Sequence record: NC_049850.1
Reading direction: 5' to 3' (one strand)
DNA length: 64,000 bases
The notes under the pieces are model-generated. The model was not told where the DNA came from, searched no databases, and saw only the letters and a list, made by a program, of their open reading frames with translations. The position numbers were made by a program, and so were the translations under genes. Shown one piece after another: positions 33,269 through 37,688 of the stretch; the stretch's first letter is position 1, and every line of letters starts with the position of its first letter.

Positions 33269-34111
33269 ATGCAGACCAAACAGATCAACAAGCTGGAAGT
33301 CCTGAAGAACGTCATCAAATGCGACTCGAACGCCGAGGGCTGGGTCGATGTCTACAAGATGGCGGAAAAGCTGGAACTCTACAGCTTCCACGGGGGCCCG
33401 GACGACGCGCAAACCCGTCTCCGTGTGTATGCGGTCACCGAATGGCGTTGCACCGACACGCACGTGGGTCTCAGCGCCATCTACTTCGACGGCAAGCTCG
33501 TTGGCTGTATCGAACAGTGGTCGCGTAAGGGTGACGTGAACTACTCGTGGGTGAGTACCGAGGCCGCGATGGCGGTCCGCAACTTTCTGGCCGAGGGCAT
33601 GGAATTCCAGTTCCCGACCATCGGAGCCGACGACACTGTGGATTCGCGCTATCGCGTGAACTACCGTGATCAGATTCTGTGCGTCAACGGTTGGTACGCC
33701 GATAAACCGGTCACCTACGTCAAGGAGCCGCGCGCTCGGGCAGACGGGAAGTATCTGGCGTTCGACGCCGATTACGACTGCGTTATCCTGATCGCGCACG
33801 AGGACGGCACCACCGAACGGATTCCGGTGTCCGAGTTCTACATGGACCTGCACGTTCCGAAGCACGTGGTCGACGATCTGTTGACAGACGCCGAATAAGC
33901 GCGTACGATACGCCCATCTGATCACGGGAGGCCCATCATGAAGTACTTCTGGATTGCGGTTGTCGCGTTTCTAGTCTGCGACGCCTACCTGTACACCGAG
34001 AACGGTGAGTCGTATTTCTGGGGCAACCAACACCGTATCGAACGCCTTTTCAAACACGTGGCTCTCAGCCTCGGCACCTACCACGCTCAGGAGGATCAAG
34101 AAGATGAATAA
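33269..34111 (+). CDS. Hypothetical protein (33269-33898) and small TM protein (33938-34111, not in track)
   Basis: Second ORF begins MKYFWIAVVAFLVC...; GGAGG RBS. Confidence 0.65.
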
Positions 34112-35138
34112 ATACGCAGCGGAGTTCTTCGGCAAGTTTCACTACGCGGTCACGGTCGGCTACGACAGGGCCGATGGTGGCCCGTTCCAGTTCAACGATG
34201 GCATTTGCGAGAACTTCAGCGTGTACCTGCGTCGCGTTGGCGTCCCGGGCATCATCAAGGATGCGTATATGCGCGCCCTCAAGGACGCCTTCCAGTTCAA
34301 CGGACAGGACCGCGTGTTCCCGTTCAATCCGGGACGCATGGCCGAGTACAGTGAGGAAGTGCTCACGAACAAGGTCTACAAGAACGAGGAACGTCTTGCG
34401 TTCCTGCGCAACATGGTCAACGACTACGATCTGGTCGAACATCGCGTGGTTCCCAACCTGCTTGATCATTACTTCCGCGAACTGGACACGTGGCTGGACG
34501 TTAGCGCCGAAGGGCAGCGTCGGTTCCGAAACTACACCGGCATCTGCACGAACGTCGAGCACTGGCTCCAGTCCCATGGCGTGGACGATTTCGCACTCAC
34601 CTGTAACATGCGAAACCAGTTGACCCAAGAGTTCCAGATCGCGCTGAGCGCTCGTGACGAAGGTGTGTACGATGGCTACCCGTTCAACGCCAACGTCGGC
34701 CACTACCTGAAGGAAGCTCAGGCGTGCACGATCTACGACAACGCAGAGCGCGTAGCCTACATCCGTCGCCGGGCTGCACGTGCCTATCTGAACACGAGCA
34801 CCATCGACGCGTTCCTGACGGAATTCCGTCAGTGGTTCACGAACGGGCGCGCTGCCGACAACACGTTCTCGTCTGCGGCTGCTGTCTGTTCGAACCTGAC
34901 GCGGTGGATGCGGAGCACCGGAGCCGACGACTTCGCGTGCACGTGGGCACAGAAGAACCTCATGGAAAAATTCGTGCGCATGGGGCTTCACGCGCGATTC
35001 CCGTTCAACGAGCGCGCGATGGAATACGCAGACGAGCGTGACGCCGGAACGTTTTACAAAAACCCCAAGCGCTGTGCTTGGATCGAAAAGATGGGAATCA
35101 TTTCACATGCAGAACTCTGCAAGCAGTTCGGGGAATAA
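34104..35138 (+). CDS. Three-repeat protein (GICxN...PFN...NxxR family)
   Basis: Three copies: GICEN/GICTN/AVCSN ... FPFN/YPFN/FPFN ... YKNEER/YDNAER/YKNPKR. Confidence 0.8.
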   Translation: MNKYAAEFFGKFHYAVTVGYDRADGGPFQFNDGICENFSVYLRRVGVPGIIKDAYMRALKDAFQFNGQDRVFPFNPGRMAEYSEEVLTNKVYKNEERLAFLRNMVNDYDLVEHRVVPNLLDHYFRELDTWLDVSAEGQRRFRNYTGICTNVEHWLQSHGVDDFALTCNMRNQLTQEFQIALSARDEGVYDGYPFNANVGHYLKEAQACTIYDNAERVAYIRRRAARAYLNTSTIDAFLTEFRQWFTNGRAADNTFSSAAAVCSNLTRWMRSTGADDFACTWAQKNLMEKFVRMGLHARFPFNERAMEYADERDAGTFYKNPKRCAWIEKMGIISHAELCKQFGE

Positions 35139-35299: not shown

Positions 35300-35329
35300 G
35301 CCCCTTCCAACAAGTGACTGGAGGTGTTA

Positions 35330-35536
35330 ATGAACAACGTAGCGTCCCGCATTCTCGGCATCCTGAGCACCGAACTCGATCTCGAACCCGAGCACCTGAG
35401 CGTCGACCATTCGTTCCATTTTTCGGAATTCGAAACCGCATTGGACGACGAGTTCGATCTTCTGTCTGGTGCCGTCGTCTACGAATTCATGTCCGTGCGT
35501 GACATGGCATCGCGCATCGAGCGAGTTCTGGCGTGA
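35330..35536 (+). CDS. Acyl-carrier-protein-like protein lacking the DSL loop
   Basis: SRILGILSTELDLEPEHLSVDHSF / EFETALDDEFD / SVRDMASRI align to AcpP helices I, II and IV. Confidence 0.65.
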   Translation: MNNVASRILGILSTELDLEPEHLSVDHSFHFSEFETALDDEFDLLSGAVVYEFMSVRDMASRIERVLA

Positions 35537-36774: not shown

Positions 36775-37158
36775 ATGCGTGCAACTCATGCAAAGCTTGA
36801 AGTCACGGGAGACCGCAGCGCCCTTATCACGGCCGACATCCTAGCGCGCTTTATCGGCAGCGAAATTACGTATCTCGCGGACTTGGTGGACGACACGCAA
36901 CCCCTGCGAGTCGTAAACCTGCGCTTCCGTGGTGATCTCGCAGACCTGCACGGTGAAAAGATCATGCTGCCGTTCGCGGATGCAGTTCGCGGCGGCAAGG
37001 CTCTCGGGCTGCTCATCAAGCGCATCAACTGCGCGACGGCGCAAGTGGGCTATGCAGCACACAGTTTGGTTGATCAGTATGATGGTGCAACCGTGGACAC
37101 CGATGCGGAAACCGGGAAGATCGTGGTGACCGTACGACTTCAAAGGAGCCGAGCATGA
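36775..37158 (+). CDS. Hypothetical protein
   Basis: GGAGG RBS. Confidence 0.65.
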   Translation: MRATHAKLEVTGDRSALITADILARFIGSEITYLADLVDDTQPLRVVNLRFRGDLADLHGEKIMLPFADAVRGGKALGLLIKRINCATAQVGYAAHSLVDQYDGATVDTDAETGKIVVTVRLQRSRA

Positions 37159-37688
37159 CGCCACGACAACGCGAAAACGCGCGGCTCGCAATCGATCAGG
37201 GCAATCGCTACCCGCCCGACAGCCTGCAAACCGCTCACTGGACGCTGGACGCGGCTCGCGGTATCATCCACGATCTGAGCGACCGTGGCTCGTTCGATGA
37301 CGCGCTGGACAAGTGCGATCAGGCGGTTCTCGACGAAATCACGGTCGCGATCCAGAACATCATCCGGGTCGCGCACGCCTCTGTTAGCGAGCACGCGGAT
37401 CAGCCGCCCTCAGCCACCGATGCGGCCATCGCGCTGGCGCATGAAGCCCAGTCGGCCGTCACCTCGATCTACGCTACGCATTTCGGTATCGGTGACGTGC
37501 AGTGGCATGAGGACATCGAGCGCGAAACTGGGCTGGACGAGCACGACCGTCAGGAATTGCAGGAGGCACTGGAACAGCGTTTCAGCGCCGTGTTCGACGA
37601 GCGCGAATTCGAGGCGTGCCGCACGGCCAGCGCTCTCGTCGCCTTTATCGTCAAGAACCTGTTGCCGTTCGAGGTCGACCGTGGATGA
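37155..37688 (+). CDS. Two-domain protein with C-terminal ACP-like domain (Ser position occupied by Glu)
   Basis: ETGLDEHDRQELQEALEQRF...EFEACRTASALVAFI vs AcpP [20 protein letters not shown]...EAEKITTVQAAIDYI. Confidence 0.7.
   Translation: MTPRQRENARLAIDQGNRYPPDSLQTAHWTLDAARGIIHDLSDRGSFDDALDKCDQAVLDEITVAIQNIIRVAHASVSEHADQPPSATDAAIALAHEAQSAVTSIYATHFGIGDVQWHEDIERETGLDEHDRQELQEALEQRFSAVFDEREFEACRTASALVAFIVKNLLPFEVDRG

Follow-up and report, generated by a model that had tools for sequence, protein, structure and literature searches.

The 64,000-nucleotide stretch of DNA analysed here (the window) covers bases 186001-250000 of Burkholderia phage BcepSaruman (MK552140.1; the record shown is NC_049850.1), a 263.7-kb jumbo myovirus infecting B. 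cenocepacia, to which the stretch is 100% identical by megablast. Our subject is a single open reading frame (ORF) that coincides exactly with the annotated coding sequence (CDS) BcepSaruman_347 (gp347; QBX06760.1, hypothetical protein; Table 1), and whose product seems to join a helical N-terminal domain to a relative of the acyl carrier protein (ACP) with a glutamate at the position of the serine that bears the prosthetic group. The gene is part of a long series of small genes, unannotated and all read in the same direction. It is preceded by a Shine-Dalgarno-like motif, its ATG overlaps the stop codon of BcepSaruman_346 (ATGA), and its 3' end, with the stop codon, shares 8 nt with the start of BcepSaruman_348; this good ribosome-binding site and these overlaps mark it as an ordinary gene of the accessory block, coupled in translation to its neighbours. 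The whole protein is strongly acidic, with an isoelectric point (pI) of 4.6, a net charge of about -18 and a content of aspartate plus glutamate (D+E) of about 19%.

The resemblance to ACP is found in the C-terminal half. The Pfam profile PP-binding (PF00550) matches residues 107-165 on its positions 8-67 of 67 (E = 0.0014, 19.3 bits), and the phage family PHROG 5934, 'acyl carrier protein', matches over 74 of its 93 positions (E = 1.2e-4). When the whole protein was used as phmmer query against the PDB sequences, all seven matches (E up to 10) were ACPs, and with the C-terminal 85 residues alone ACPs occupied the top 20 of 22 places (best E = 1.6e-4). Since ACPs make up a tiny share of PDB sequences, match lists filled by them amount to more than chance. 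In the alignment to 6lvt_A, residues 96-169 are paired with nearly all of an 81-residue ACP, spanning all four helices with one 2-residue gap, and the match to E. coli ACP (1acp_A, chain residues 26-72) is ungapped. The domain itself, residues 96-170, has a pI of 4.55 and a net charge of about -10. Judged by these matches, its resemblance to ACP is not accidental, and it is sequence profiles that argue for the fold of this part. An earlier note on this DNA had proposed a C-terminal ACP domain (its peptide corresponds to residues 98-166) that aligns almost without gaps to AcpP and is fused to an N-terminal domain of ~95 residues; all of this is borne out by the Pfam, PHROG and PDB matches and by the presence of a separate helical domain at residues 1-85 with a linker to about 95.

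One could still suppose that an acidic helical segment has come to look like ACP helix II by chance. The Pfam score is sub-threshold, and a profile-profile comparison of thin two-sequence alignments (hhalign; E = 0.09, with Glu aligned to Ser) was weak to the point of being uninformative. Moreover, the AlphaFold2 (AF2) model of full-length gp347, calculated from a 17-sequence alignment that is deep for the N-terminal part only, has a mean predicted local distance difference test (pLDDT) of 63, with low confidence in the C-terminal part and no ACP fold match. However, the helices predicted at residues 87-110, 117-125, 129-146 and 149-169 coincide with ACP helices I, II and III-IV, helix II starting at residue 129 (pLDDT 49-63). 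In the structure prediction, which the earlier note had named as a check, the helices are thus placed as in an ACP, at low confidence and with no fold match. In addition, three independent collections (Pfam, PHROG and PDB) agree, nearly all of the PDB matches of the C-terminal part are ACPs, the four-helix alignment needs one short gap, and the ortholog described below passes the Pfam gathering score with 30.4 bits. We therefore regard a fortuitous likeness as very unlikely.

In every alignment Glu129 fills the column of the phosphopantetheine-bearing serine, with G-L-D-E-H-D of gp347 lying on G-[LMA]-D-S-L-D, and the match to 1acp_A equates Glu129 with Ser36. A glutamate at this position is what the earlier note had read from the sequence, adding that a serine aligned at the modification site, or the lack of any PP-binding profile match, would speak against its proposal. 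No alignment places a serine there, and the profile match is present, with a score that falls short of the gathering cut-off. The nearest hydroxyl residue to the vacated site, T125, lies four positions upstream and outside the motif. The GAG codon of Glu129 is identical in the related phage BcepSauron, and the residue is therefore not a sequencing slip. Because Glu129 replaces the serine, the ACP-like domain of gp347 is predicted to be unable to take 4'-phosphopantetheine (Ppant), and hence would not be a carrier. No phosphopantetheinyl transferase is annotated in the BcepSaruman record, a statement that comes from reading the annotation and not from a profile scan.

The partners of ACPs commonly dock onto helix II. 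In E. coli ACP numbering (from the 1acp_A match), D35, D38, E41, E47 and F50 of this helix are kept in gp347 as D128, D131, E134, E140 and F143, and the changes along the helix are S36 to E, L37 to H and E48 to Q. With the serine gone and the acidic residues of helix II kept, the cofactor-carrying part has therefore been lost and the recognised part largely retained. AcpS no longer modifies E. coli ACP in which D35, E41 and E47/48 have been neutralised (bioRxiv 10.1101/2025.01.28.635281). Set against bacterial type II ACP (AcpP, PF00550), gp347 is alike in the size and order of its predicted helices, in its acidity (pI about 4.5), in the way helix II opens (G-x-D-[site]-x-D) and in these five residues. 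It is unlike AcpP in having DEH for DSL (Glu for Ser and His for Leu37), in its fused domain, in a profile score just below the cut-off and, as predicted, in its lack of carrier ability.

A word-based search of 5.8 billion proteins returned a sole ortholog of gp347, BcepSauron_350, from a phage that is 93-94% identical to BcepSaruman. It shares 91% identity over 175 residues, keeps the glutamate (G-L-D-E-N-D) and is 96 residues longer, owing to an in-frame indel of 288 bp just 5' of the stop codon that is present in BcepSauron and absent from BcepSaruman. Deletion in BcepSaruman is the simpler polarity for this indel in a comparison without an outgroup. BcepSauron_350 exceeds the PF00550 gathering score in two stretches, and NCBIfam ACP models match its residues 204-240. 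The extra module of 96 amino acids is ACP-like and retains a serine; in a joint alignment with canonical ACP the Ser of its motif, Q-I-N-S-A-D, falls on the attachment site and the Asn on D35.

This second BcepSauron module (residues 176-273) hence carries N-S for D-S, the natural equivalent of a D35N substitution. D35N ACPs escape AcpS yet are still loaded by Sfp-type transferases (bioRxiv 10.1101/2025.01.28.635281), and by analogy the module, if loaded at all, would probably be loaded by an Sfp-type enzyme. Its best PDB sequence matches are designed helical repeat proteins, that is, low-complexity noise. For neither ACP-like module did an exhaustive phmmer search of 1.84 billion representatives return a relative. 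When the three ACP-like modules and the ACP of contig L007 (see below) were compared in pairs by BLASTP, no significant similarity emerged, and we rejected a recent duplication of the first module as the source of the second on account of this dissimilarity.

Between BcepSaruman and BcepSauron the two halves of the gene differ in their pattern of substitution. In codons 93-175, the ACP-like part of 83 residues, there are 2 non-synonymous and 4 synonymous differences, corresponding to a ratio of non-synonymous to synonymous substitution rates (dN/dS) of about 0.14, similar to the values of 0.09-0.32 in neighbouring genes. On these small counts, this part looks to be under purifying selection and maintained. 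In codons 1-60 (window 37155-37334), non-synonymous differences number 14 and synonymous ones 5, for a dN/dS of about 0.83 (Fisher p = 0.016 in comparison with the remainder of the gene, the counts again being small); of the 16 amino-acid differences that separate the protein from that of BcepSauron, 14 cluster here. The pattern suggests that selection on the surface of the N-terminal domain is relaxed or diversifying, and part of this surface would be changing fast.

A ratio of 0.83, as seen at contested surfaces, together with the net charge of about -18, the pI of 4.6 and a place in a lengthy stretch of small accessory genes, might also be expected of a general acidic decoy, for instance a nucleic-acid mimic directed against host defence, in which the ACP ancestry would be irrelevant. 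We find this account very improbable, since ACPs are equally acidic, so that ancestry explains the charge, and no similarity to anti-defence or DNA-mimic families was found in PHROGs, Pfam, PDB or BFVD.

Two further genes of BcepSaruman, both confined to its genus, encode ACP-like domains (Table 1). BcepSaruman_119 (gp119) is annotated as 'acyl carrier protein-like'. It has 83 residues, is 98.8% identical in BcepSauron and carries the motif F-D-D-L-D-L-T-D with Asp in the Ser column, and profiles lend it weak support (Pfam E = 0.071; PHROG 5934 E = 9.8e-4). BcepSaruman_422 (gp422), which lies 1.7 kb past the end of the window, has 617 residues and is annotated as 'hypothetical', its annotation in BcepSauron being 'peptidase'. 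It passes PF00550 (31.2 bits) and is composed of about five ACP-like repeats, with an acidic D/E-rich linker near residues 270-300. The last repeat alone is canonical (G-W-D-S-M-D); repeats 1, 2 and 4 have Glu, Asp and His, respectively, and repeat 3 is not alignable at this site, all in alignments that are weak. The Ser column is hence acidic in four of the five alignable degenerate domains of the phage (Glu in gp347, Asp in gp119, Glu and Asp in gp422 repeats 1 and 2), the fifth being the His of repeat 4. From these alignments, BcepSaruman appears to employ the ACP fold repeatedly, as a module that in most cases lacks the serine.

A fourth candidate was rejected. BcepSaruman_341 (gp341), an acidic protein of 70 amino acids that looks by eye like an ACP with the D-S-L region deleted, and is probably the 'ACP mimic 1' of the earlier note, has no Pfam ACP or PDB match and is missed by hidden Markov models of the ACP-like domains. 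The sole hint of ACP kinship is a phmmer match to gp119 with E = 3.

The degenerate repeats of gp422 repeat the pattern seen in gp347, and, with the absence of the second module from BcepSaruman through an in-frame indel and the lack of close relatives elsewhere, they would fit a history of decay. According to this scenario an ancestral multi-ACP protein of the phage is degenerating, and the Glu domain is left over as a soluble acidic spacer or a folding aid for the N-terminal domain, with no ACP-related role. We consider this rather unlikely. The ACP-like part has accepted just two replacements (dN/dS about 0.14), compared with 14 in residues 1-60 of the N-terminal domain, and the docking residues of helix II are specifically kept.

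The N-terminal domain (N-domain) comprises about residues 1-85, followed by the linker. In an exhaustive phmmer search of the same 1.84 billion representatives, two N-domain proteins matched residues 7-75 weakly but specifically (E = 2.3e-4 and 3.5e-4), and a profile built from those two recovered 15 proteins in 5.8 billion clusters (E = 1e-12 to 1e-19). Most members of this rare phage family are stand-alone proteins of 84-118 amino acids with the motif W-A-H-A-A-A-R-G-I ... D-R-R-G-I-K ... D-E-D-V-R-x-E-I-V, and the family motif W-x3-A-A-R-G-I-x2-D-L-x-D-R ... D-E-D-V-R-x-E-I-V is present in the gp347 N-domain. W29, A33, I37, R44 and E61 are invariant in a 14-sequence alignment, and R35 and G36 nearly so. 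In phage-like contigs and prophages, the members are surrounded by small genes of early or accessory type. One stand-alone member is located on the 971-kb megaplasmid pMPCFBP13716 of Pseudomonas fluorescens CFBP13716, and the family is therefore not strictly confined to phage contigs.

AF2 folds the N-domain into four helices (pLDDT 78). Foldseek found no match to this model below E = 2 in the PDB, and in BFVD it retrieved only the protein itself, BcepSauron and unnamed viral proteins. The family profile gave only noise at E > 1 among PDB sequences, with no LYR protein, and the domain belongs to no Pfam or PHROG family. The 'effector domain' of the earlier note accordingly found no backing, as there is no catalytic signature and no named match in Pfam, PDB or BFVD; for the same reasons the N-domain looks like a binding module. 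Two specific identities were tried and dropped. The N-domain is not a hidden ACP repeat, for which the MAFFT placement was an artefact and the hhalign probability 0.25%. Nor is it a LYR-motif protein, given that Complex1_LYR is absent from the Pfam matches at E up to 10 and no such protein is found among the sequence or fold matches in the PDB. Any likeness of the N-domain to LYR proteins would be functional only.

One member of the family adjoins a genuine ACP. On L007, a phage-like 70-kb Logan contig (SRR34093465) with small co-directional genes, a canonical ACP of 90 amino acids is encoded (G-F-D-S-I-S; PF00550 precomputed, NCBIfam ACP models E = 2e-13), and at its stop codon begins the gene of a tandem (two-copy) N-domain protein. 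A CoaD (pantetheine-phosphate adenylyltransferase; TIGR01510, 134 bits against a cut-off of 103.3) is encoded 3.3 kb downstream. These genes look like a phage-borne module for phosphopantetheine and coenzyme A (CoA). BLASTP of 12.7 kb of L007 against BcepSaruman showed nothing in common except the N-domain, and the L007 ACP, used as a homology query, is an orphan with no relatives found. When two rare gene types are fused in one lineage and adjacent in a second, as the N-domain and ACP are here, this classically points to a functional link, which is suggested by two cases only.

Together these features lead us to propose, with about even confidence, that gp347 is a non-loadable pseudo-ACP that serves as an interaction module, either decoy or adaptor. 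The protein would be a non-enzymatic, strongly acidic accessory protein made of two binding modules. Its C-terminal domain would descend from a type II ACP, having become unloadable with the acidic docking face of helix II retained. Its N-domain belongs to a small phage family tied to ACPs by fusion in gp347 and by adjacency in L007. In this way gp347 could occupy or recruit ACP-binding proteins without ever carrying an acyl group. The candidate targets would be enzymes of the host that depend on ACP, or a partner encoded by the phage, for example BcepSaruman's own serine-bearing ACP-like domains. The analysis shows the homology, the absence of the serine, the kept docking residues, purifying selection and the domain associations; binding as such, the identity of the partner and the effect on the host are what we infer here.

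Several observations weigh against this proposal. By itself, BcepSaruman_347 scores narrowly below the PF00550 gathering score of 20.8 bits. AF2 gives a pLDDT of just 49-63 for the C-terminal domain, and Foldseek against the PDB finds no ACP match for the model, only noise at E > 2. Orthologs are present in only two phages of one genus, which leaves minimal comparative power. The serine-bearing module is absent from BcepSaruman without obvious harm, which could mean that the whole ACP-like region is being lost. Finally, among about 14 genomic contexts of the N-domain, an ACP occurs only in the Saruman/Sauron fusion and in L007, and the 49 neighbouring ORFs across the 12 further contexts gave no PP-binding match.

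Glu129 may also be read as more than a block to loading. Its carboxylate could imitate the phosphodiester at Ser36, in which case the domain would be taken by its partners as permanently 'loaded' holo-ACP, and the N-domain would deliver or read that state. In ACP-Isd11 complexes an arginine contacts the negatively charged phosphate oxygens of Ppant, and in the mitochondrial ACP of P. falciparum the residue at the serine site is part of the interface (PMC8547962). The acidic residues in the Ser column of most of the degenerate domains in BcepSaruman point in the same direction, as do the conserved arginines of an N-domain family (R44 invariant, R35 nearly so) that adjoins a genuine ACP in L007. 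However, the pantetheine arm and the acyl chain, which most partners recognise, find no substitute in a single carboxylate. Asp and Glu are, moreover, ordinary in the first turn of a helix and common in a protein with this D+E content, and the gp422 repeat alignments are weak. We hold such mimicry to be improbable; the simpler reading of Glu129 is that of a carrier which cannot be loaded (apo-locked) and has kept its docking helix.

Serine-less ACPs are already known from apicomplexan mitochondria, and phage ACPs are known as auxiliary genes. The mitochondrial ACP of P. falciparum has Phe for Ser and binds Isd11-Nfs1 without Ppant (eLife 2021, PMC8547962). It is like gp347 in having lost the attachment serine while still under selection, and there it is a protein-binding subunit. 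It is unlike gp347 in belonging to a eukaryotic organelle, in having a hydrophobic Phe and not Glu, and in having a known partner, a LYR-motif protein, whereas gp347 is without a LYR match. The phage ACPs filed as auxiliary metabolic genes (PHROG 5934) are the best phage-family match of gp347. They are, however, annotated as stand-alone carriers of about 80-90 amino acids, unlike the fused, divergent and serine-less gp347.

A parallel for the proposed mechanism may be seen in E. coli, where overproduced unmodified ACP is reported to have been found toxic by Keating, Carey and Cronan in 1995. There an unloaded ACP can reportedly disturb host lipid metabolism simply by occupying partners, which is the mechanism proposed here for gp347, but that case concerns artificial overexpression of the host's own protein. 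We know of no phage protein that exploits inhibition of the apo-ACP type. A search of the accessible literature found no paper on these genes, on the N-domain family or on serine-less ACP-like domains in phages; the Matilda preprint and a jumbo-phage review name BcepSaruman and BcepSauron but say nothing of ACPs.

The separate elements could be joined into a wider hypothesis. The N-domain would be a new phage-specific ACP-binding module, a functional analogue of eukaryotic LYR-motif proteins, and gp347 would combine this reader with a pseudo-loaded carrier in which Glu129 stands for the Ppant phosphate. With three genes of serine-less ACP-like domains, the Sarumanviruses would then capture or shut down host ACP-dependent enzymes of fatty-acid, lipid A or acyl-homoserine-lactone synthesis in the course of infection. 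We offer this as a speculation that is quite improbable as a whole. ACP is among the most connected proteins of the bacterial cell, and to our knowledge no phage protein targets the ACP interaction network by imitation.

As a non-loadable interaction module, a serine-less phage copy of ACP that seems to be maintained by selection would be a natural probe for those ACP partners that matter in infection. Its value as a probe is raised by the fusion to a domain that elsewhere adjoins a true ACP and a gene of the CoA pathway. If the proposal is true, the principle of an ACP without a prosthetic group, so far a matter of apicomplexan mitochondria, would extend to viruses. If gp347 is a decaying remnant instead, it would provide a clean case of domain loss between two phages of 93-94% identity. 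The BcepSauron indel, the L007 neighbourhood and the expansion of the gene family are leads that make the proposed role of gp347 testable.

Table 1. Location of BcepSaruman_347, its parts and the other genes and domains discussed. Positions refer to the window unless another record is named.
Feature	Position	Strand	Details and basis
Shine-Dalgarno-like AAAGGAG	37142..37148	+	6 nt 5' of the BcepSaruman_347 ATG; sequence
CDS BcepSaruman_347	37155..37688	+	177 aa; ORF list, annotation
N-terminal helical domain, residues 1-85	37155..37409	+	family alignment, AF2 model
Linker, residues 86-95	37410..37439	+	ACP alignment begins at 96; AF2 helix 87-110 runs through 87-95
ACP-like (PP-binding-like) domain, residues 96-170	37440..37664	+	Pfam, PHROG and PDB sequence matches
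Helix-II 'recognition helix' segment, G126-F143	37530..37583	+	ungapped match to 1acp_A 26-72
GAG codon of Glu129, column of the phosphopantetheine-bearing Ser	37539..37541	+	alignments
3' end of gene, site of the 288 extra bases (96 codons) of BcepSauron	37671..37688	+	comparison with BcepSauron
BcepSaruman_339	34005-35138	+	annotated start 34104
BcepSaruman_341 (gp341)	35324-35536	+	rejected ACP-like candidate
BcepSaruman_119 (gp119)	MK552140.1 69003-69254 (= L014:19003-19254)	-	putative ACP-like domain
BcepSaruman_422 (gp422)	MK552140.1 251736-253589 (= L004:22237-24090)	-	about five ACP-like repeats
Second BcepSauron module	L002:4526-4819		BcepSauron_350 residues 176-273
Stand-alone N-domain member on pMPCFBP13716	L017:5001-5258		
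Candidate phosphopantetheine/CoA module of L007	L007:4083-4762 and L007:8095-8601		ACP, tandem N-domain protein and CoaD

The window also contains BcepSaruman_339. In BcepSauron, neighbouring genes are annotated 'carbamoyltransferase' and 'aminotransferase (DegT)?', names without counterpart in the BcepSaruman annotation. BcepSaruman_339 itself has three internal repeats, which match PHROG 2510, a family of unknown function (E = 2.6e-43).

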